From positions 930,001 to 994,000 of the forward strand of contig OZ251226.1 of assembly GCA_965240325.2 (NCBI GenBank): DNA of 64,000 bases, in the 5' to 3' direction. Positions 21,094-48,769 of the stretch are shown here, in pieces. The notes below the pieces were generated by a model. That model was given only the letters and a program-made list of their open reading frames with translations. It made no database searches and had not been told where the DNA came from. Source of the stretch: Rebecca billardiae RCC1528. Its lineage: Eukaryota; Protista; Haptophyta. How positions within the stretch are numbered: the stretch's first letter is position 1; each line of letters begins with the position of its first letter. Made by a program: the position numbers and the translations under genes.

Positions 21094-21567
21094 GCTGCTC
21101 CAACGGCCGCGCGGCTCGCTGGCCGTGAAGCGCTTGGCTCCAGACAACAACGATGGCGGTTGCCCCTGGCAAGTTGGGCCAAGGGGTCTTATGGGTCTCA
21201 AAATTCGAAACTCGGTTCCCTGCCGCCTGAAATTCGTCCCCAGTCCCTTTTTCTTTAACGACGTGGTATGCAACGGGCAAGCGTCAGGCTCAGAGTGCAG
21301 CAGACACATACTCATAGAATGCGTCCGCGCCTTCCAACCAGGTCAGGCAGTGCGCCACCCGCAGCCCTGCCCCTCTGAGGGAGAAGGGCCGGGATGGAGC
21401 CACCCGAGCACCTCATTTTTCTTGATCAAAGTAGATCTTTTTTATAATATGAAACTACTACTGCGTGGTTAGGGCCCGCACTGCGGGCTCCACGCTGCGC
21501 GCTCCGCCCTGCACCGCGGGCCATTATTAGGCCGCCGGAGTAAAATTATATTAATAACAGCTTTACG

Positions 21568-24156
21568 TCAGGACGATGACGACGACTGCACCAAGTCGCG
21601 TGCCAACCCTTCTGCAAAGCGTGCGTTGCTCGCGGCTGAGCCAGATGCACCGCTGTAGTCCTCGTAGCTCACGCGCACGACCTGCCAGCCCAACGATTCG
21701 AGCACGCGCGTCTTCCACTGGCTGGGCCCGTTGAGCCGCTGCGCGCCCGTCCACGGGTCGGTCACGAAGTGGGACGGCCCATCGTACTCCACAACCACCT
21801 TGGACGCGGTGCACGCCATGTCCACGACGAGCAGCCCGCCCTCGCCGATGCGCACCTCCTCCTCGTGCGCCCAGCCGCACTCTGCGAGCGCGCGAGACAG
21901 CGCCCGCTGCGATGACGACGAGCGCACCCGTGATACTCGGTCACGAAGCAGCTGGCTACCGAGGCACTGCGCCAGCATGGACTCCACACGCGTGCGTGCG
22001 GTGCCAACGGGCAGGCGTGCATCGGCGTGCAGCGTGAGCAGTGCCTGCGCCACATTGATGTGCGCCTCGAGCGCGAGTTGCGCTTGCAGCCCAGATGCAG
22101 CAAGGAGTCGCTCGCACAGGGACAGCAGAAGCTGCCGATGCGCCATGTGCTGGCCAGCCGTCGCATATGCCCACGCCGTGTTGGCCAGCTCCTGCGCATT
22201 GAACTCCCCCACGCGCGCCTCGGCCTCCCGCGCGATCGCGCCATACAGCGCGGGCGCGTCCACGCCCGCTGTGGCGTACGCCCACGCCGTGTTGGCCATG
22301 TTCTGCGGCTTGAACTCGCCCACACGCGCCTCGGCCTCCCGCGCGATCGCGCCATACAGCGCGGGCGCGTCCACGCCAGCTGTGGCGTACGCCCACGCCG
22401 TGTTGGCCAGCCCCTGAGCATTGAACTCGCCCACGCGCGCCTCCGCCTCCCGCGCGATCGCGCCATACAGCGCGGGTGCGTCCACGCCCGCTGTGGCGTA
22501 CGCCCACGCCGTGTTGGCCAGCTCCTGCGCATTGAACTCGCCCACACGCGCCTCGGCCTCCCGCGCGATCGCGCCATACAGCGCGGGTGCGTCCACGCCA
22601 GCTGTGGCGTACGCCCACGCCGTGTTGGCCATGTTCTGCGCATTGAACTCGCCCACGCGCGCCTCGGCCTCCCGCGCGATCGCGCCATACAGCGCGGGTG
22701 CGTCCACGCCCGCTGTGGCGTACGCCCACGCCGTGTTGGCCATGTTCTGCGGCTTGAACTCGCCCACACGCGCCTCGGCCTCCCGCGCGATCGCGCCATA
22801 CAGCGCGGGCGCGTCCACGCCCGCTGTGGCGTACGCCCACGCCGTGTTGGCCAGCCCCTGCGCATTGAACTCGCCCACGCGCGCCTCGGCCTCCCGCGCG
22901 ATCGCGCCATACAGCGCGGGTGCGTCCACGCCAGCTGTGGCGTACGCCCACGCCGTGTTGGCCAGCTCCTGCGGCTTGAACTCGCCCACACGCGCCTCGG
23001 CCTCCCGCGCGATCGCGCCATACAGCGCGGGTGCGTTCACGCCAGCTGTGGCGTACGCCCACGCCGTGCTGGCCAGCCCCTGCGCCTTGAACTCGCCCAC
23101 GCGCGCCTCGGCCTCCCGCGCGATCGCGCCATACAGCGCGGGTGCGTCCACGCCAGCTGTGGCGTACGCCCACGCCGTGTTGGCCATGTTCTGCGCATTG
23201 AACTCGCCCACACGCGCCTCGGCCTCCCGCGCGATCGCGCCATACAGCGCGGGCGCGTCCACGCCCGCTGTGGCGTACGCCCACGCCGTGTTGGCCAGCC
23301 CCTGCGCATTGAACTCGCCCACGCGCGCCTCCGCCTCCCGCGCGATCGCGCCATACAGCGCGGGTGCGTCCACGCCCGCTGTGGCGTACGCCCACGCCGT
23401 GTTGGCCAGCCCCTGCGCATTGAGCTCGCCCACACGCGCCTCGGCCTCCCGCGCGATCGCGCCATACAGCGCGGGCGCGTCCACGCCCGCTGTGGCGTAC
23501 GCCCACGCCGTGTTGGCCAGCCCCTGCGCATTGAACTCGCCCACGCGCGCCTCGGCCTGGCGCGCGATCGCGCCATACAGCGCGGGTGCGGCTACACCAG
23601 CTGTGGCGCACGCCCACGCCATGTTGGCCAGCTCCTGCTCATTGAACTCGCCCACGCGCGCCTCGGCCTCCCGAGCGATCGCGCCGAATGTGCGCTCGGC
23701 ACCGCACTTGGTCGGCCGGAGCTTGGCCAGGCCGTGCGCTAGGTTAGCCACTTGGCGGGCGCTATACGGCGAGCCGTCGACTGCCGTGGCCTCCAGCCGC
23801 CGCTCCACGCGCGCGAGCAGCGCGCCAAAGCGCTTGTCGGTGCGCAGTGCGTGGCCGCGCAACGTGCGCGCGTTGCGACCCAGTCGAGAGATGGCTGTAG
23901 CGTCGTTCACCGGGTCGAACGCGTGGCCATGCGTAGCGCACACATCGAGGATGCGTTTCGCGTCACGTGCATCCGTGAGCTGCCGGTTGATCATTTTGTT
24001 GTCTGGCCGGCGTGATGGGCCGTTTGTGTGCATCGCCGCCCGTAGCGCAGCACAGGCGAGTGCGGGCGAAGGCGGCATGCGCGCTCGCAACCCATACGCG
24101 TTGCGCGGGCATGCGCCCGCACTGGTGCTCACCAACCGCCCTAACAGCCCGAGCAT
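21568..24156 (-). CDS. HPR/OPR-type 37-aa repeat protein with C-terminal RAP domain, paralogue 1 (13.5 repeats, ~862 aa, intronless)
   Basis: Arg/Ala/Leu-rich, acid-free leader MLGLLGRLVSTS. 14 repeat starts at exact 111-bp spacing with consensus FNAQxLANTAWAYATAGVDAPALYGAIAREAEARVGE. RAP motif 'VDMAC..KVVVEYDGPSHF...KTRVLESLGWQVVRVSY'. Confidence 0.92.
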   Translation of the reverse strand: MLGLLGRLVSTSAGACPRNAYGLRARMPPSPALACAALRAAMHTNGPSRRPDNKMINRQLTDARDAKRILDVCATHGHAFDPVNDATAISRLGRNARTLRGHALRTDKRFGALLARVERRLEATAVDGSPYSARQVANLAHGLAKLRPTKCGAERTFGAIAREAEARVGEFNEQELANMAWACATAGVAAPALYGAIARQAEARVGEFNAQGLANTAWAYATAGVDAPALYGAIAREAEARVGELNAQGLANTAWAYATAGVDAPALYGAIAREAEARVGEFNAQGLANTAWAYATAGVDAPALYGAIAREAEARVGEFNAQNMANTAWAYATAGVDAPALYGAIAREAEARVGEFKAQGLASTAWAYATAGVNAPALYGAIAREAEARVGEFKPQELANTAWAYATAGVDAPALYGAIAREAEARVGEFNAQGLANTAWAYATAGVDAPALYGAIAREAEARVGEFKPQNMANTAWAYATAGVDAPALYGAIAREAEARVGEFNAQNMANTAWAYATAGVDAPALYGAIAREAEARVGEFNAQELANTAWAYATAGVDAPALYGAIAREAEARVGEFNAQGLANTAWAYATAGVDAPALYGAIAREAEARVGEFKPQNMANTAWAYATAGVDAPALYGAIAREAEARVGEFNAQELANTAWAYATAGQHMAHRQLLLSLCERLLAASGLQAQLALEAHINVAQALLTLHADARLPVGTARTRVESMLAQCLGSQLLRDRVSRVRSSSSQRALSRALAECGWAHEEEVRIGEGGLLVVDMACTASKVVVEYDGPSHFVTDPWTGAQRLNGPSQWKTRVLESLGWQVVRVSYEDYSGASGSAASNARFAEGLARDLVQSSSSS
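22155..23685 (-). repeat. 111-bp coding tandem array (13.5 units)
   Basis: The unit recurs with exact 111-bp phase from 22201 to 23644 (13 x 111). Confidence 0.97.
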
Positions 24157-24620
24157 CCTTCTCCAGGCCGGCCCCGTGCGCCGCGACGCCGCGTGGAAGA
24201 CGACCCCGCGTCTCCAGCTGCAGCCGTGTACGTCGGACCAACCCGCATTCGTCATCGATCGACACGATGGCGGCCAAATCCTCCGGCGGCCGTCTCACTT
24301 ATTCGTACTCGTCACGTCGGTCAAGTGCTGCACGCGTGCAGGTGCGCCTGCTGCCACGGCTCGCGCCGCACGTGCGCGCTGCGCTCGAATAAACGGGCGC
24401 GCTGCTGGGCGAGAACGAGCCGAGGGATGCGGCTCGCGCGTGCATTGCTGCGGCGAGCCCCGCCCCAGCTACTCTAACTGTCTGTGGCGGCGGCCGGCGG
24501 CGGGGTCAATCGCCGGCACTGCCGGGCCGGAGTCGGCCAGCCGAGGCGTCGGCATCCGCGTAGTCGGGCGATTACGACCGCTATCGCTGCTGGAGCCGGA
24601 TACTAGGCGCGGGCCTGACA

Positions 24621-36016: not shown

Positions 36017-36495
36017 TCACCATCACGCAGCTAGTGAGCTTGTGAATGTGAGCAGCAGCCGCGGCTTGTGACGACACGGTCGGACGGTCGGACGGTGCCG
36101 GTGCGGCGGGGGCAGCGGCGGCGCGACGGCGTCGGCGGTGGCGCGCTCGTACAGCGTCTGCAGCACGTGCGCAGCGTGACTGCGTGTGCAGCAGCGCGCC
36201 GCTCAGCTCCCGCCGCTCCACGCCGCCGCAGCGGCGCGCGCGGCGCGCGCCCGCCTCGGCCGCGGCCGCGCCCGCCACCATCCGTCGCGCCGCCGCCAGC
36301 TGCTGCGCCGTCGGTGACGGCGGCGGGTCGAGTGCAGAGAGGAGGTGGATGAGCCAGTGCAGCTCGGACTGCGTGACGTCCACGTCCACCACCGCGTCCT
36401 CCTTCGCCACCGCCATCTCCTCCGCCCGCCCCGCCCCCCAGCGGCGGTCCCACCACTTAGTAGGCGGCGACCGCGGCCCGGCGCACGCCGCCGTG

Positions 36496-36995
36496 ACGCC
36501 GCGGGCGCCCGGCGAGCGCTCGGATGACGAAGCGGCTGGGCGGCAGCGTGGGCGGCGAGGCGACGCGCTCTCCGCCGCTGACGGAGGAGTTGACGGAGGT
36601 CGTGCGCGCTAGGTCGGCGGCGGTGTGCGCGGCGGCGCTGGGCGAGTGCGCCAGCCTCTCGGGCAGCACATGCCCCGCCGCGCGCCCGCCGCCGCCCAGG
36701 CTCCCGCGCTCGGCCGCGCGCCGCGCCGCCGCGCTGTCCGCACGCCGCGGGCGCCCGGCGAGCGCTCGGATGACGAAGCGGCTGGGCGGCAGCGTGGGCG
36801 GCGAGGCGACGCGCTCTCCGCCGCTGACGGAGGAGTTGACGGAGGTCGTGCGCGCGAGGTCGGCGGCGGTGTGCGCGGCGGCGCTGGGCGAGTGCGCCAG
36901 CCTCTCGGGCAGCACATGCGCCACATGCCCCGCCGCGCGCCCGCCGCCGCCCAGGCTCCCGCGCTCGGCCGCGCGCCGCGCCGCCGCGCTGTCCG
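36496..36995. repeat. 246-bp tandem duplication (36496-36740 and 36742-36995) in an unannotated GC-rich segment
   Basis: 'acgccgcgggcgcccggcgagcgctcggatgacg' occurs at 36496 and 36742. The second copy carries a 9-nt microduplication. Confidence 0.92.
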
Positions 36996-37340
36996 GATGG
37001 CGCACCTCCCTCGACTGCGCCGCCACCATCGCCCTCGCTCCCTGCAGTCGCCGCCCCCGCCGCCTGCCGTGACGCGCTCGCCGCGCGCCGTTCGGGCGGC
37101 ACTCGCGGGCGGCGGCGTCGGCTGAGAGCCGGCGGCGGTGACGCGCGGGCGGCCGCCGCTGGCGAGGGTGAGGACGGACATGCCGTTCGGCGCGCCTCCC
37201 TCGTCCGTGCCGCCACCACCGCCCTCGCTCCCTTCAGCCGCCGCCCCCGACGCCTCCGCCTGGCCGCTACAAAGGCCGCCGCATCGCACCGGGACTCGCG
37301 CCGACGTGCGGGCGGCGGTTGGATCGTGACTGTTCGCGAC

Positions 37341-37388
37341 CAGAGAGCCCAGAAGTGACGGTTGTTAACTCGTACCATAAAACTTTAC
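37341..37388 (+). repeat. Dispersed ~50-bp motif B, copy 1
   Basis: 'cagagagcccagaagtgacggttgttaactcgtaccataaaactttac' matches 63877-63928 with a few substitutions/indels. Confidence 0.8.
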
Positions 37389-37562: not shown

Positions 37563-37704
37563 ATAGGAGACGATACTTTACTCTTTGAATTGGAATCAGC
37601 AAACCAAAAGTGTATATCAGCAGGAGAATCACGATAGGAGACGATACTTTACTCTTTGAATTGGAATCAGCAAACCAAAAGTGTATATCAGCAGGAGAAT
37701 CACG
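37563..37704. repeat. Exact 71-bp tandem duplication in an AT-rich island
   Basis: 'ataggagacgatactttactc...aggagaatcacg' occurs at 37563 and 37634. Confidence 0.95.
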
Positions 37705-38580
37705 AACGGCCCACCATAATTATCAGAAAGATGCAGACGCCTTTGTCCTATTCGAGTTCGATTTCTTCTATTACTTACTATCCAAGGATTAAGGAGCAGT
37801 ACAAACGCAATCATGAGCAGCGATATCGAGTCAAATGCGGATTTCACACCTAAATCCACCTACAAAAATCCCCCAAATCCTGCGCGCATCCTCTTTTTTG
37901 ATTTTGCGGAGCACGTGCGCCGCCCCCCCCGGCTTTCGCTCACGCTCAGACCTTTCGGGGGGCCGTGCGCCATTATAGCATATCAGCATCAGCGATCGCC
38001 GATATATATACGCGGCGCGAAGTGCCGCGAACGCGGCATGAAAACAATTCCCCCGCATCCCCACTGGGCGGAAGTGCGGACGGGTTACGGTAACGCCGAA
38101 AATCGATTTCTTTACTGTGTATCACATATATATTTAACGACGTAGCATGCAACGCCGGGCAGGCGTCAGATGACAGAGTCAGCTGAGCTGGCACGGCAGC
38201 AGAAGTCGAGCAGCGGCGACCGGACAGTCACAGCAGTATTTAATTCTGCGATTATAATATTTGTTTAAACTATTATTTGATATATTATAATAAACTACGT
38301 AGTTATTGTCCGCGCATTTATTGCCGCCAACAGCGGTGAGTCCGTGTTCGAACCGCCAGTAGCAGCGCGACGACGGCAGGCCGATAATGGGCGCGCCCTA
38401 GTATCATACTGTACTTGTAGCCTTAGAGAGAGAGTAAGAGCCAGCTACTGAGCTAGAGAAAGTGCGCGCACTGCGCTGCCACTGTCTTGGACCCAGCCAC
38501 AAGACCCAGCGCCCAGAGTACGTCGTGTCATCGACCCAGCCACTGATGTCATGATTAGTAGAAGTAAAACAGCTTCGTCG

Positions 38581-41058
38581 TCAAGACGATGACGACGACT
38601 GCACCAAGTCGCGTGCCAACCCTCCTGCAAAGCGTGCGTTGCTCGCGGCTGAGCCAGATGCACCGCTGTAGTCCGCGTAGCTCACGCGCACGACCTGCCA
38701 GCCCAACGATTCGAGCACGCGCGTCTTCCACTGGCTGGGCCCGTTGAGCCGCTGCGCGCCCGTCCACGGGTCGGTCACGAAGTGGGACGGCCCATCGTAC
38801 TCCACAGCCACCTTGGACGCGGCGCACGCCATGTCCACGACGAGCAGCCCGCCCTCGCCGATGCGCACCTCCTCCTCGTGCGCCCAGCCGCACTCTGCGA
38901 GCGCGCGAGACAGCGCCCGCTGCGATGACGACGAGCGCACCCGTGACACTCGGTCACGAAGCAGCTGGCTACCGAGGCACTGCGCCAGCATGGACTCTAC
39001 ACGCGTGCGTGCGGTGCCAACGGGCAGGCGTGCATCGGCGTGCAGCGTGATCAGTGCCTGCGCCACATTGATGTGCCCCTCGAGCGCGAGTTGCGCTTGC
39101 ACCCCAGATGCAGCAAGGAGTCGCTCGCACAGGGACAGCAGAAGCTGCCGATGCTCCATGTGCTGGCCAGCCGTCGCATACGCCCACACCGTGTTGGCCA
39201 TGCTCTGCGCATTGAACTCGCCCACGCGCACCTCAGCCTCCCGCGCGATCGCACCATACAGCGCGGGTGCGTCCACGCCCGCTGTGGCGTACGCCCACGC
39301 CGTGTTGGCCATGTTCTGCGCATTGAACTCGCCCACGCGCGCCTCGGCCTCCCGCGCGAATGCGCCATACAGCGCGGGTGCGTCCACGCCAGCTGTGGCG
39401 TACGCCCACGCCGTGCTGGCCAGCTCCTGCGCATTGAACTCGCCCACACGCGCCTCGGCCTCCCGCGCGATCGCGCCATACAGCGCGGGCGCGTCCACGC
39501 CCGCTGTGGCGTACGCCCACGCCGTGTTGGCCAGCCCCTGCGCATTGAACTCGCCCACGCGCGCCTCGGCCTCCCGCGCGATCGCGCCATACAGCGCGGG
39601 TGCGTCCACGCCCGCTGTGGCGTACGCCCACGCCGTGTTGGCCAGCTCCTGCGGCTTGAACTCGCCCACACGCGCCTCGGCCTCCCGCGCGATCGCGCCA
39701 TACAGCGCGGGTGCGTCCACGCCAGCTGTGGCGTACGCCCACGCCGTGCTGGCCAGCCCCTGCGCCTTGAACTCGCCCACGCGCGCCTCGGCCTCCCGCG
39801 CGATCGCGCCATACAGCGCGGGTGCGTCCACGCCCGCTGTGGCGTACGCCCACGCCGTGTTGGCCATGTTCTGCGCATTGAACTCGCCCACACGCGCCTC
39901 GGCCTCCCGCGCGATCGCGCCATACAGCGCGGGCGCGTCCACGCCCGCTGTGGCGTACGCCCACGCCGTGTTGGCCAGCCCCTGCGGCTTGAACTCGCCC
40001 ACGCGCGCCTCCGCCTCCCGCGCGATCGCGCCATACAGCGCGGGTGCGTCCACGCCAGCTGTGGCGTACGCCCACGCCGTGTTGGCTAGCTCCTGCGCAT
40101 TGAACTCGCCCACGCGCGCCTCGGCCTCCCGCGCGATCGCGCCATACAGCGCGGGTGCGTCCACGCCAGCTGTGGCGTACGCCCACGCCGTGTTGGCCAT
40201 GTTCTGCGCATTGAACTCGCCAACGCGCGCCTCGGCCTCCCGCGCGATCGCGCCATACAGCGCGGGTGCGTCCACGCCAGCTGTGGCGTACGCCCACGCC
40301 GTGTTGGCCAGCTCCTGCGGCTTGAACTCGCCCACGCGCGCCTCGGCCTCCCGCGCGAATGCGCCATACAGCGCGGGTGCGTCCACGCCCGCTGTGGCGT
40401 ACGCCCACGCCGTGTTGGCCAGCTCCTGCGCATTGAACTCCCCCACGCGCGCCTCGGCCTCCCGCGCGATCGCGCCATACAGCGCGGGCACGTCCATGCC
40501 CGCTGTGGCGTACGCCCAAGCCATGTTGGCCATGTTCTGCGCATTGAACTCGCCCACGCGCGCCTCGGCCTCCCGCGCGATCGCGCCGAATGTGCGCTCG
40601 GCACCGCACTTCGTCGGCCGCAGCTTGGCCAGGCCGTGCGCTAGGTTAGCCACTTGGCGGGCGCTATACGGCGAGCCGTCGACTGCCTTGCCCTCCAGCC
40701 GCCGCTCCACGCGCGCGAGCAGGGCGCCAAAGGGCTTGTCGGTGCGCAGTGCGTGGCCGCGCAACGTGCGCGCGTTGCGACCCAGTCGAGACATGGCTGT
40801 AGCCTCGTTCACCGGGTTGAACGCGTGGCCATGCGTAGCGCACACATCGAGGATGCGTTTCGCGTCACGTGCATCCATGAGCTGCTGGTTAATCATCTTG
40901 TTATCTGGCCGGCGTGATGGGCCGCCAGCGTGCATCGTCGCCCGTAGCGCAGCACAGGCGAGTGCGGGCGAAGGCGGCATGCGCTCTCGCAGCCCATACG
41001 CGCTACGCGGGCATGTGGCCGAAGTGGTGCTCACCAACCGCCCTAACAGCCCGAGCAT
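38581..41058 (-). CDS. HPR/OPR-type 37-aa repeat protein with C-terminal RAP domain, paralogue 2 (12.5 repeats, ~825 aa, intronless)
   Basis: Same leader, repeat consensus and RAP domain as 21568-24156. 13 repeat starts at 111-bp spacing (39214-40546). Confidence 0.92.
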   Translation of the reverse strand: MLGLLGRLVSTTSATCPRSAYGLRERMPPSPALACAALRATMHAGGPSRRPDNKMINQQLMDARDAKRILDVCATHGHAFNPVNEATAMSRLGRNARTLRGHALRTDKPFGALLARVERRLEGKAVDGSPYSARQVANLAHGLAKLRPTKCGAERTFGAIAREAEARVGEFNAQNMANMAWAYATAGMDVPALYGAIAREAEARVGEFNAQELANTAWAYATAGVDAPALYGAFAREAEARVGEFKPQELANTAWAYATAGVDAPALYGAIAREAEARVGEFNAQNMANTAWAYATAGVDAPALYGAIAREAEARVGEFNAQELANTAWAYATAGVDAPALYGAIAREAEARVGEFKPQGLANTAWAYATAGVDAPALYGAIAREAEARVGEFNAQNMANTAWAYATAGVDAPALYGAIAREAEARVGEFKAQGLASTAWAYATAGVDAPALYGAIAREAEARVGEFKPQELANTAWAYATAGVDAPALYGAIAREAEARVGEFNAQGLANTAWAYATAGVDAPALYGAIAREAEARVGEFNAQELASTAWAYATAGVDAPALYGAFAREAEARVGEFNAQNMANTAWAYATAGVDAPALYGAIAREAEVRVGEFNAQSMANTVWAYATAGQHMEHRQLLLSLCERLLAASGVQAQLALEGHINVAQALITLHADARLPVGTARTRVESMLAQCLGSQLLRDRVSRVRSSSSQRALSRALAECGWAHEEEVRIGEGGLLVVDMACAASKVAVEYDGPSHFVTDPWTGAQRLNGPSQWKTRVLESLGWQVVRVSYADYSGASGSAASNARFAGGLARDLVQSSSSS
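39170..40587 (-). repeat. 111-bp coding tandem array (12.5 units)
   Basis: Exact 111-bp periodicity (12 x 111 between 39214 and 40546). Confidence 0.97.
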
Positions 41059-41384
41059 CCTTCTCCAGGCCGGCCCCGTGCGCCGCGACGCCGCGTGGAA
41101 GACGACGCCTGCGTCCCCTCCCGTGCTGCTCCCAAAGTTCCAACACGGTCCCTCGTCATCGACACGATGGCGGCCAATCGGGTTCACTGGATCAGGGGCT
41201 TCGGGCTGGAATGCTGGATATGCTAATCGCATCCATGCCGTCCCGGGAGTTCGGCGCACAGCCAGTGCAGTACTTGTAGTGCGCTCGCAGGACGGCGCCC
41301 GACCGGATCTCGGGGCACTCGAAGCGGCCGAGGCGGATCGTGCCGGCATCGCCGAGCGCGGCCTCGCTGATCTGTCCGCTGCGA

Positions 41385-42845
41385 ATGGCACCGTCTGCGG
41401 CTGGCGACGACCGCGGTCGCTCCGAAGCAGCTATCATCGCCAGCGCCTGCGTTCTCTGTATGGTCGGGCCATTCTCGGGGCAGCTGTTCGCTCCGTCGCT
41501 CCCAGCGATGGCGGAGGCGATCGGTGGGGGCTCCATCGGTGTCATCCAGCTCTCGATGAGCGCCTACACCATCGCCTTTGGCACTGCCCACCTGCCCGCA
41601 GGTGCGGTGTCGGACGTGTACGGGCGCGCGCCGGTGCTCGCCTTTGGTATCGGCCTGTACGCGCTCGCTTCGCTGGCGTGCCCCATGGTGGCGACGGCCA
41701 GGCAGCTGATAGTAGTGCGCTTCTTCCACGGCGCCGGTGCCGCGGCCATCTCCATCACTGGGCCCGCGTCCTTGCGCGACCTCCTAGAGTCGCCCGCTGC
41801 GCGGCAGCGCTCGATGGCGCGCGTGATCATGGCGCGGCAGACGGCCACATTCAGCTCGCCCGCGATCGGCTCGCTCGTGGCGGGCGTCCTCGGGTGGCGC
41901 TGGGTTCTTGGCCTGTACGTGCTGGTTGGCGCCTTGGCTGTGGCCGCCGCGGTGGTCCTGGTCCCACCCCTGCGCGCCAGCCATGCCCAGAAGCTCGCAG
42001 GCGAGACGGCTGCGGGCGGCACGATGGCGCTTGGCCCGGGCGCTCCGCGCAGACTCACGTGCGCGGCCATCGCTCGGCCGTTCCGCGCCCTGCTCGTTGA
42101 CCGCGCCTTCGTAGCGTACGTACTCGCCGACTCGTTCTCCCTCGCCGTGAGCCAGACCTACTCGCAAGCGGCGAGCTACGTCTTCCAGAGCTACTACGGC
42201 CTCGGGCTCGGCGGGTATGCAGTCTGGATGACACTCGTGCCCCTCTGCGTGGTTGGAGGCGTCAAGCTGACGGCGGTGGCGAGGAACGCGCTCCGCGGCG
42301 GCAATACGCGCGTGGTCAGGGCAGCCCTGCTGGCTTCCATCGGCAACGAGGCCCTGCTCCTTGCGCTGTTGCTCGTGCTGCCGCCGCACGCCGCAGCGGC
42401 ATGGTTCGCGTTTGGCTCGTTCCATTTGCTTTTCCAGGGCGTGCGCGGCATGCTCACCACGGCAGCGCAGACTATGGTCGTCGAGCTCAGCCCTGGCAAC
42501 ACGGGCAGCGCGCTGGCGTTGCTCTTCTTCGTGCGCTACGCGCTGATCACAGTCTCTGCGTACGCGATCGGCGCCCTGTACGACAGCGACTGGTGCGTGG
42601 TGGGCGCGCCTGTGCCAACTGCTGGCTTGTTTCTAGGTACTCTCGTGCTAGGCCTGATGGCATTCGACTGCTTCCGCCCACGCGGGCTGGCGGACCACAG
42701 CGCCGCGCCAGAGGCCGCCACGCCGGAGGCCGCCGCGCCGGAGGCCGCCGCGCCGGCTGCATCACCGGGTACTGCCCTGCTAGAGAGCAGGCCGCAGAGC
42801 CCGCTCCTTCATCACGTGTCTCATGCCCCCAGCTCGGCCAGCTGA
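41385..42845 (+). CDS. MFS drug:H+ antiporter (Bcr/CflA, DHA1-like)
   Basis: 'LFAPSLPAMA', MFS motif A 'GAVSDVYGRAPVL', 'LIVVRFFHGAG' and 'SPAIGSLVAGVLGWRW'. About 12 hydrophobic segments; intronless. Confidence 0.88.
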   Translation: MAPSAAGDDRGRSEAAIIASACVLCMVGPFSGQLFAPSLPAMAEAIGGGSIGVIQLSMSAYTIAFGTAHLPAGAVSDVYGRAPVLAFGIGLYALASLACPMVATARQLIVVRFFHGAGAAAISITGPASLRDLLESPAARQRSMARVIMARQTATFSSPAIGSLVAGVLGWRWVLGLYVLVGALAVAAAVVLVPPLRASHAQKLAGETAAGGTMALGPGAPRRLTCAAIARPFRALLVDRAFVAYVLADSFSLAVSQTYSQAASYVFQSYYGLGLGGYAVWMTLVPLCVVGGVKLTAVARNALRGGNTRVVRAALLASIGNEALLLALLLVLPPHAAAAWFAFGSFHLLFQGVRGMLTTAAQTMVVELSPGNTGSALALLFFVRYALITVSAYAIGALYDSDWCVVGAPVPTAGLFLGTLVLGLMAFDCFRPRGLADHSAAPEAATPEAAAPEAAAPAASPGTALLESRPQSPLLHHVSHAPSSAS

Positions 42846-47095: not shown

Positions 47096-48769
47096 CTAGA
47101 AGGCCACCGGCCCTGCGATGTTGAGGGCGGCGAGGTAGTCGATGACGAGTTTGCTCGCCTGGTCGTGGGCGTAGCGCCCGAGGCACAGGCCGCCACCCAT
47201 CACGATCAGCGTCGTCGAAGGCTGCGCGTCGCTCCCAAACAGCTCGACCGCGTCCACCCAGTCGTCCATCATCACGGTCACGATGTCCTCTTGGTGCCTG
47301 CTCCAGAGGGAGAGGACGCGATCGGTCTGATCGGGGCCGACGGCGAGGACCACCTGCGGCCGCGCGAGCCTTGGCAGCGTCGAGAGCAGCTTGAGCGCGG
47401 CCGCCTTGGGCATCTCGCGCCACGCGACCAGCATCGGCCGCAGCGAGTGGATCAGCTGCAGGTGGCGCACGACCGCAGGGTGGGGGTCGCCAAAGCGCAC
47501 GCGCGCGCGGCGCCAGGCGCGCAGCGTGGAGCTGTGCACGAGGCGCTCGGAGCCAGGTACGACACCCGCGCGGGGTACGAACAGATAGGCCAGGTCGACC
47601 GGCAGCCCGCCGCGCGCCACCTTGAGCGCCGAGCCCGCGCCGCGCACCGCGCTCGCGAGCGCGCTCGGCTCCCACAGCAGCCGGCCGATCTGGAGCGAGT
47701 CAGCGATCAGCGCGCGCGTGCTCGGGAGGCACTCGGCCTCGTACTTGCCGAGCAGCGCGTCGGTGGCCGCGCCCGACCACACGAGCGTGAGCTTGCGGCA
47801 CAGGTTGTGCGCGTTGCGCAGCCCCGCGCTCAGACCCTGCCCCAGGAAGGGCGGCACGCCGTGCGCCGCGTCGCCGCACAGGAAGACGCGTCCCGACTGC
47901 CAGCTCGGCGCGAGGCACGCCTGGAAGCGGTACACCCCATGACGCACGAGCCGCACGCTCTCCATCCGGCCGGGCTGGACGAACGGCTCGATCAGCTCGC
48001 GCACGCGCTCCGGCGCCTGCAGCTTGAGCGCGTCGTCGGCGCTGTCGACGCGGAACTCCCAGCGCACCCGGTCCTTCTGACCGCTCAGCGCAAACATGAC
48101 GGGCCGGCGGCCGTCCACCACGTGGTAGATGGCGGCCCGCGCGCCGTAGAGCACGCTCATCGGCGCGTACGCGTCCACCACCAGGGACGCCCCGCTCTCG
48201 CCGAGGCTCTCCATCCGCACGCCGATCTGCTCGCGCACAAAGCTGCTCGCGCCGTCGCAGCCGACCACAAAGCCGCCCTGCAGCTCGCGCAGCTTGCCCG
48301 TCGCGCCCTCTCGCACGACGAGGCGCGGCGTGCCGTCCTTTGCGCTCCACAGATTCACGGCGGACGTGCCGAACAGCGCGTTCACCTGCGGGTGCTTCGT
48401 GAGCACCCGCCACAGCATCGCTTCGAGCTCCGTCTGGTCAAAGAAGAGGCGCCAGTCGTCGTCGCTCGAGTCCGTCGTCACAAACGGCTCGCCTTGCGAC
48501 CAGCGGTGCATGTCCGCGTAGTAGCCGGCCGCGAGACATCGCTCGAACGCTACCTGCTCGGCCTCGACACCGAGCGCCGCGCGTATCATCGCCACGGAGA
48601 AGCTGTCGACGCTGAGGGCGCGCGGGTACGGGTACGCCTGCCGCTTCTCCTCGACAAGGGCGACGCGCATGCCCGCGCGCGCAAGTTGGAGCGCCGTCAC
48701 GCTGCCAACAGGGCCGCCGCCGACGACGATGGCATCGTACGGCGACTCCACCGCTCGGCGCCTCGCCAT
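47096..48769 (-). CDS. FAD-dependent aromatic monooxygenase (MhpA/PheA family)
   Basis: 'AIVVGGGPVG', 'YPRA', 'FFDQTELEAML', 'VVGCDGASSFVR' and 'GRVFLCGDAAHGVPPFLGQGLSAGLRNAHNL'. Intronless. Confidence 0.9.
   Translation of the reverse strand: MARRRAVESPYDAIVVGGGPVGSVTALQLARAGMRVALVEEKRQAYPYPRALSVDSFSVAMIRAALGVEAEQVAFERCLAAGYYADMHRWSQGEPFVTTDSSDDDWRLFFDQTELEAMLWRVLTKHPQVNALFGTSAVNLWSAKDGTPRLVVREGATGKLRELQGGFVVGCDGASSFVREQIGVRMESLGESGASLVVDAYAPMSVLYGARAAIYHVVDGRRPVMFALSGQKDRVRWEFRVDSADDALKLQAPERVRELIEPFVQPGRMESVRLVRHGVYRFQACLAPSWQSGRVFLCGDAAHGVPPFLGQGLSAGLRNAHNLCRKLTLVWSGAATDALLGKYEAECLPSTRALIADSLQIGRLLWEPSALASAVRGAGSALKVARGGLPVDLAYLFVPRAGVVPGSERLVHSSTLRAWRRARVRFGDPHPAVVRHLQLIHSLRPMLVAWREMPKAAALKLLSTLPRLARPQVVLAVGPDQTDRVLSLWSRHQEDIVTVMMDDWVDAVELFGSDAQPSTTLIVMGGGLCLGRYAHDQASKLVIDYLAALNIAGPVAF

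Follow-up and report, generated by a model that had tools for sequence, protein, structure and literature searches.

Proteins of the HPR/FASTK type control mitochondrial RNA in humans, apicomplexan parasites and algae, the human members of the FASTK-like RAP proteins being FASTKD1-5. To our knowledge, no rules have been described by which HPR/FASTK repeats choose their RNA. The HPR family and the FASTK-like RAP proteins have been described by Hillebrand et al. 2018 (PMC6212722), and the apicomplexan mitoribosomal HPR and RAP proteins in PMC11652630; no recognition code has been described for the HPR family (the word "code" is absent from PMC6212722). The present analysis concerns two genes, here called paralogues A and B, in a stretch of 64,000 nucleotides (nt) of the haptophyte Rebecca billardiae RCC1528 (contig OZ251226.1, positions 930,001 to 994,000 of the forward strand), referred to below as the window. 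Both share with the HPR/FASTK-like RAP proteins the 37-amino-acid (aa) two-helix DUF1601 repeat, the C-terminal RAP domain and the mitochondrial solenoids as relatives. Known HPR tracts are degenerate, whereas the units of the window genes are approximately 97-98% identical at the DNA level, with their variation confined to five codons. The arrays of A and B differ by unequal recombination and small cassette replacement around a conserved core. What the present comparison adds is this orthologous core, the number and kind of the events that separate the arrays, the shared variant pool and the parallel cases in environmental sequences.

Paralogue B (38581-41058, minus strand) is a complete coding sequence of 825 aa plus stop, with the start ATG at 41058-41056 and the stop at 38583-38581; the translation is uninterrupted and no intron is needed. 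Pfam yielded DUF1601/HPR with 77.7 bits (cut-off 25) and RAP with 29.6 bits (cut-off 24.2). The N-terminus (residues 1-50; 40909-41058, minus) is presequence-like, with a net charge of +6 and one acidic residue, and is disordered in the structure model. The HPR array of B (39154-40596, minus) holds 13 units of 37 aa (111 nt), the last of them half-diverged; the unit spacing is exactly 37 aa, the repeat length of the HPR family. Tandem Repeats Finder reported a 111-nt period with 12.7 copies and 93% matches at 39179-40587. The C-terminal RAP or PD-(D/E)XK-like domain (38584-38928, minus) is supported by the Pfam match, the secondary structure and an alignment with 38 relatives. Paralogue A (21568-24156, minus) encodes 862 aa with 14 units; its array spans 22141-23694 (111-nt period, 13.7 copies and 93% matches at 22169-23685), and its RAP domain scores 30.0 bits, above the Pfam gathering score. 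A, like B, also passes the curated Pfam cut-off for DUF1601. Weak Pfam matches to DUF559 and to the restriction endonuclease family REase_MTES_1575 were found in both proteins. The strict FASTK family carries FAST_1 and FAST_2 upstream of RAP, whereas neither was matched at E <= 0.1 in either window protein (Pfam); among the relatives FAST_1 gave a faint precomputed match only. The G+C content of the window is 60-80%.

An AlphaFold model of B, built with 40 aligned sequences, has a predicted local distance difference test score of 85.8 overall and of about 98 over the array, in which each unit forms two helices (helix 1 from unit position 37 to 12, helix 2 from position 19 to 32). The RAP domain shows the helix-strand-strand-strand-helix-strand order of PD-(D/E)XK nucleases. 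Its residues D741, E753, D755, H759 and K778 are retained in both paralogues; among 40 aligned sequences every one has E753, and at least 90% keep G756, H759 and K778. The RAP domain may thus cleave RNA or help to hold it, and the Arg-rich presequence would target the protein to an organelle, most likely the mitochondrion. Nearly all Foldseek matches were mitochondrial RNA-associated solenoids, namely RESC6, Toxoplasma mitoribosome HPR/RAP proteins, PPR10, and Chlamydomonas and Polytomella mitoribosome repeat proteins; ASA2 was also among the best matches. The best solved homologue, both by sequence (phmmer against PDB sequences, E = 2.6e-24) and by fold (template modelling score 0.83 on the target), is trypanosome RESC6 (PDB 8fn4/8fni), which is annotated as a RAP-domain protein; unlike the window genes it is single-copy, sits in a fixed complex (RNA editing substrate-binding) and has diverged repeats. 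The nearest database proteins are 56-58% identical, and the named ones come from haptophytes (Pavlovales, Chrysotila, Phaeocystis), pelagophytes and other stramenopiles; there were no green algae among the named database matches.

Unit by unit, the residues at positions 18-22 of B read NAQNM, NAQEL, KPQEL, NAQNM, NAQEL, KPQGL, NAQNM, KAQGL(S), KPQEL, NAQGL, NAQEL(S), NAQNM and NAQSM, where (S) refers to position 24. These 13 codes are identical to those listed in the first-pass annotation, and the other paralogue has 14 units in another order. Unit variation was surveyed among the 23 internal units of A and B. Nearly all of it falls in a patch of five codons: codon 18 is AAT or AAG (N/K), codon 19 GCG or CCG (A/P), codon 21 GAG, GGG or AAC (E/G/N), codon 22 CTG or ATG (L/M) and codon 24 AAC or AGC (N/S). 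Beyond the patch there are four recurrent silent sites (codons 10, 13, 32 and 36) and a few singletons. In the model the patch corresponds to the N-cap (position 18) and to N1, N3, N4 and N6 of the second helix. Non-synonymous and synonymous differences per site (pN and pS) were estimated after Nei and Gojobori. The patch has a pN of 0.243 and a pN/pS of 3.2, whereas the other 32 codons have a pN of 0.006, a pS of 0.08 and a pN/pS of 0.07; the rest of each unit has probably stayed under strong purifying selection or homogenisation. A McDonald-Kreitman-style count of variant alleles (6:2 in the patch versus 4:8 in the scaffold) was not significant (p = 0.17), so that the frequency-weighted pN/pS contrast carries the argument for selection.

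Within the patch, variants occur in small cassettes. AAC21 and ATG22 are in complete linkage (p = 4e-6), N21 always occurring with M22, and AAG18 is linked to CCG19 (p = 3e-4), K18 occurring mostly with P19; the 18/19 and 21/22 cassettes, 6 nt apart, show no linkage and assort freely. GGG21 also shows linkage, to a silent site lying 45 nt further downstream (p = 0.005), which indicates that some unit types have spread by the copying of stretches of at least 45 nt. The mean distance between units, per 111 nt, is 5.80 within A, 5.71 within B and 5.57 between the two; units are no more alike within than between arrays, and A and B therefore draw on one variant pool, which is older than their split. 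Every variant codon comes from an alphabet common to both arrays. The silent CGT of codon 13 recurs on every second unit of A (A3, A5, up to A13) and is also found on B7, B9 and B11. A weak lag-4 periodicity was detected in A (p = 0.03, the best of six lags), and a lag-3 periodicity in B was not significant (p = 0.27). The alternating CGT and the four-unit periodicity in A hint at traces of multi-unit block duplications.

The two arrays were aligned by dynamic programming at the level of units over all gap costs. At every gap cost units A4-A8 (22807-23361) pair with B6-B10 (39487-40041, minus), with 5 differences in 555 nt (unit-order shuffle p = 0.0005) and with agreement of the silent markers. 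When the diagonal is extended through A9/B11 and A10/B12, 15 differences in 777 nt are found (p = 0.002), and co-linearity probably extends over A4-A10 and B6-B12, reaching 39265 in B. The first-pass annotation had recognised only a block of four units shared in register (units 5-8 versus 7-10). That block is real, a run of at least four identical codes (A5-A8 versus B7-B10) appearing in 23 of 2000 unit-order shuffles, but at the DNA level the block has five units and the diagonal runs on to A10/B12. Within it, the only difference between A4 and B6 is the replacement of adjacent TG by GC, so that the 18/19 cassette can change in a unit that is otherwise the same. The A9/B11 pair is recoded, KPQNM in A standing against NAQEL(S) in B, by six changes that fall within 21 nt and a seventh outside. 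The patch of the aligned core has 8 non-synonymous and 0 synonymous changes (pN 0.096); these 8 changes amount to two clustered replacements, one of 2 nt and one of 6 nt. Silent divergence in the aligned core is 0.0275, equal to that of the structured flanks (0.02-0.04), and the core is therefore orthologous and of the same age as the flanks. Counted from the N-terminal anchor the core lies two units further in B, and counted from the C-terminal anchor three units further in A; since it is offset at both ends, whole units must have been gained or lost on either side of it, in no fewer than two events. The N-proximal units A2-A3 and B2-B5 have no code in common. The earlier suggestion that target specificity is rewritten by unit shuffling faster than point mutations build up holds, for the arrays themselves, in so far as the events are of the recombination type (offsets, shared alphabet, clustered replacements), but "shuffling" overstates the case for arrays in which five to seven units are co-linear.

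Outside the arrays, the leader differs between A and B at 27 of 462 nt (5.8%) and the C-terminal part including RAP at 11 of 585 nt (1.9%), in line with the scattered substitutions on near-identical flanks reported at first pass. The two values differ significantly (Fisher p = 0.0008). Of the 27 leader differences, 18 are concentrated in the first 198 nt, where the paralogues have diverged most. By segment, divergence is 0 of 48 nt in the probable 5' untranslated region (UTR), 9% in the first 198 nt, 3.4% in the remaining leader, 0.9% in the core and 1.9% in the C-terminus. The corresponding values of pS and pN/pS are 0.11 and 0.72 for the presequence, 0.04 and 0.76 for the rest of the leader, and 0.02 and 0.96 for the C-terminus. 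A public contig of 233 nt (run X1, record 7) matches the first 118 coding nt with 6 differences (window 40941-41058) and is unrelated exactly from the ATG; it probably represents another family member that shares only coding sequence.

At the DNA level the similarity between the copies spans 38565-41115 and 21552-24212, that is, the gene together with about 120 nt of its upstream sequence; past the stop it fades within about 45 nt. When 36-44 kb was compared with the window itself, nothing was shared beyond the gene. The genes flanking the two copies are unrelated to each other; the neighbours encode NudC, a short-chain dehydrogenase, a large ankyrin/cyclic-nucleotide-gated channel, an MHYT protein, a major facilitator superfamily (MFS) transporter and two flavin oxidoreductases. 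Homology that ends at the gene borders, together with unrelated neighbours, identifies A and B as separate genes. Joining of two haplotypes in the assembly, named in the first-pass annotation as a way in which its reading could fail, is ruled out by the same observations, and the two copies, 17 kb apart, lie dispersed among unrelated genes.

The sharp end of homology within unrelated DNA would also be expected if A and B were older paralogues whose coding regions had been kept alike by ongoing non-allelic gene conversion, with the core of five to seven units as a recent tract; the low divergence of the flanks would then be uninformative on the speed of array change. The uneven divergence along the gene, from the identical 5' UTR to the first 198 nt, fits this explanation, as does the run X1 contig, which behaves as another family member would. 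Conversely, the silent divergence of the aligned units agrees with that of the structured flanks, as from a single age, and the fastest segment is the disordered presequence, for which relaxed constraint alone is a sufficient explanation. Ongoing gene conversion is therefore regarded as unlikely, though it is the rival to be taken most seriously.

The observations are probably best explained, as a whole, by a young, dispersed nuclear pair (silent divergence approximately 0.02-0.04) in a multi-copy HPR-RAP family, whose arrays were changed by unequal recombination and by cassettes. Each protein would consist of an Arg-rich presequence, an alpha-solenoid of 13-14 near-identical 37-aa helix pairs and a RAP domain of nuclease fold. 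The solenoid would bind single-stranded RNA with one unit per base, as PPR proteins do, and patch codons 18, 19, 21, 22 and 24 would constitute the specificity code. The patch is read in this way because it lies topologically where the code residues of PPR proteins lie; that it sets RNA specificity is suggested by this analogy and by the selection pattern. Since the split of the genes, or their last exchange, whole units would have been gained or lost by unequal recombination on no fewer than two occasions, and cassettes of 2-6 nt would have been replaced from the variant pool common to both arrays.

Several observations weigh against this explanation. The array has a net charge of -25, more negative than is usual in RNA-binding proteins, although PPR arrays of consensus design share this acidity. 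The flanks including RAP have near-neutral pN/pS values of 0.7-1.0, calculated on 3-12 changes per class, and from these values one of the copies may be under relaxed constraint. The sole public run with this DNA, at a share of 0.08, covers the gene only with contigs of 64-241 nt. Among 104 relatives, variability within proteins places position 21 first and position 18 third of the 37 unit positions, but positions 8, 11, 12, 15 and 35 are nearly as variable and positions 22 and 24 are conserved, so that family-wide support for the exact patch is only moderate. In the window genes homogenisation has erased the variation of the first helix and left that of the patch, as would be expected if only patch variation were protected by selection.

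The acidic array, and the presence of ASA2 of the Polytomella ATP synthase among the best fold and sequence matches, would suit a solenoid that acts as a protein scaffold, with the patch tuning protein contacts and without any reading of RNA. The RAP domain and nearly all other matches are, however, RNA-associated, and variation confined to a single small polar patch that recurs in each unit fits the modular reading of a polymer better; a scaffold role is accordingly considered improbable.

For comparison, 76 array-bearing genes from metagenome contigs were examined. In six pairs drawn from different samples, flanks and arrays are both identical, whereas every pair with flanks 90-96% identical has different arrays (e.g., L011 versus L014, with 14 and 13 units). 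This pattern indicates that the behaviour of A and B is typical of the family, and arrays appear to change over the time in which flanks diverge by a few per cent, which is not a hypermutational rate. Clean gains or losses of two units on identical flanks are seen in the contigs L004 (9815 onward) and L007 (1502 onward) and in the proteins P0002 and P0018. In L004 and L007 the code residues co-vary with a variant of the first helix, and whole unit types alternate. In the relative P0020, which has the same unusual RAP motif, the repeats are only 79% alike at the DNA level, which shows the homogeneity of the window arrays to be extreme. A metagenome search with the C-terminal domain found no close relatives, and a protein search with a C-terminal piece of 194 aa gave no matches. 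In the literature on RAP proteins in haptophytes and on gene conversion in OPR genes, no earlier description of HPR arrays of such homogeneity was found.

Units that are 97-98% identical over 1.4 kb are hard to assemble, and the order of units might in part be an artefact of assembly or polishing. The public run covers the gene only as short contig fragments, and the two-unit differences of L004/L007 and P0002/P0018, between otherwise identical genes, could be mimicked by the collapse of repeats during assembly. On the other hand, both reading frames are intact, there are no chimeric or novel patch codons, linkage within cassettes is strict, and a run of five units matches between two separate loci down to the silent markers, which makes an artefact very improbable. 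Least credible is a repertoire for antiviral or other defence against foreign RNA, as raised at first pass, for which only the general pattern of multi-copy, fast-changing recognition modules fused to a nuclease fold speaks, whereas the N-terminus is presequence-like, the fold relatives are all mitochondrial and the neighbours are ordinary housekeeping genes; no support for defence emerged, though no scan of viral collections was made.

Upstream of both coding sequences the order is the same: 48 identical nt directly before the ATG (41059-41106, minus, in front of B), which are the probable 5' UTR, about 50 nt that have diverged, and an identical element of 20 nt, TTGGCCGCCATCGTGTCGAT, about 100 nt from the ATG (41158-41177, minus, in front of B; 24258-24277, minus, in front of A). 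This element occurs in the window only at these two places (0.01 matches expected by chance) and may be a family-specific promoter or 5' UTR element; both genes are presumably expressed. In A, the ATG that comes immediately after the 20-mer reads in frame with the gene and would lengthen the protein by 33 residues (24157-24280, minus), whereas in B (41059-41180, minus) it is out of frame and opens a short upstream frame that ends just past the main ATG. Homologous N-termini of A and B are obtained only from the shared MLGLLG start, which is the predicted one. The MFS transporter gene (41340-42845, plus) is transcribed away from B with fewer than 300 nt between the starts; the pair would be served by one very short promoter region acting in both directions.

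Elsewhere in the window, a flavin adenine dinucleotide-dependent monooxygenase (47096-48769, minus) has bacterial proteins as its best matches when its own protein is set aside, at 37% identity (Candidatus Poriferisodalis), and may be a gene of bacterial origin in the alga. A frame of 391 aa (36203-37378, minus) without a Pfam match contains a direct repeat of approximately 250 nt, 96% identical, at 36496-36995; a perfect tandem duplication of 71 nt lies near it at 37563-37705.

In arrays as homogeneous as those of A and B, only residues that are presumably functional still vary. Against an otherwise constant protein background, the units in which the paralogues differ are few and have all been enumerated, and the two form a natural test pair for recognition rules. 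It is possible, though tentative, that the patch is the recognition code of HPR/FASTK repeats, exposed here through the erasure of all neutral variation by concerted evolution, and that the proteins are naturally programmable ones retargeted by the exchange of 2-6 nt cassettes and of whole units between arrays. If so, A and B would recognise sites with a common core of 5-7 nt that differ on both sides, and the scaffold would provide a new designable RNA-binding module.

Among known systems, the NCL (NCC1-like) OPR-RAP cluster of Chlamydomonas is, like A and B, a young paralogue family of helical-repeat and RAP proteins. According to the account of Boulouis et al. 2015 given in PMC8635915, single repeat substitutions turn an NCL protein towards a different organellar transcript and lead to the destabilisation of that transcript. 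The NCL repeats are OPR repeats of 38 aa with the motif PPPEW, whereas the window units have 37 aa and lack PPPEW; NCL genes diverge by point substitution, A and B by unit gain or loss and by cassette replacement on a homogenised scaffold; and the NCL genes form a cluster, whereas A and B are dispersed among unrelated genes. The resemblance to NCL noted at first pass is therefore one of analogy and not of family, as the HPR type of the repeat and the named database matches also indicate.

In PPR proteins the code is carried by positions 1, 4 and ii, which occupy the end of a loop and the first turn of a helix (PMC8635915), topologically like positions 18, 19, 21 and 22 of the window units, by analogy. 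These proteins are likewise alpha-solenoids, reading single-stranded RNA one repeat per base, and PPR10 is among the fold matches, but the PPR repeat has 35 aa and belongs to another sequence family, and natural PPR arrays are degenerate.

In mode of evolution a counterpart is found in the transcription activator-like (TAL) effectors of Xanthomonas and Ralstonia, which have near-identical tandem repeats with a small hypervariable site and change by recombination, by gain and loss of repeats and by swapping between paralogues. These are bacterial, type III secreted, DNA-binding proteins of unrelated fold, with repeats of 33-35 aa and a hypervariable loop di-residue at positions 12/13. The likeness to A and B extends to the mode of evolution alone, repeat length and sequence family being different and A and B being eukaryotic genes, and the variable site, a loop di-residue in TAL effectors, is the N-cap and first turns of a helix in A and B. 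Paralogues A and B are HPR-RAP proteins that evolve in a TAL-effector-like way, and they document, in a eukaryotic RNA-binding family, the recombination-driven evolution of arrays known from those bacterial proteins.

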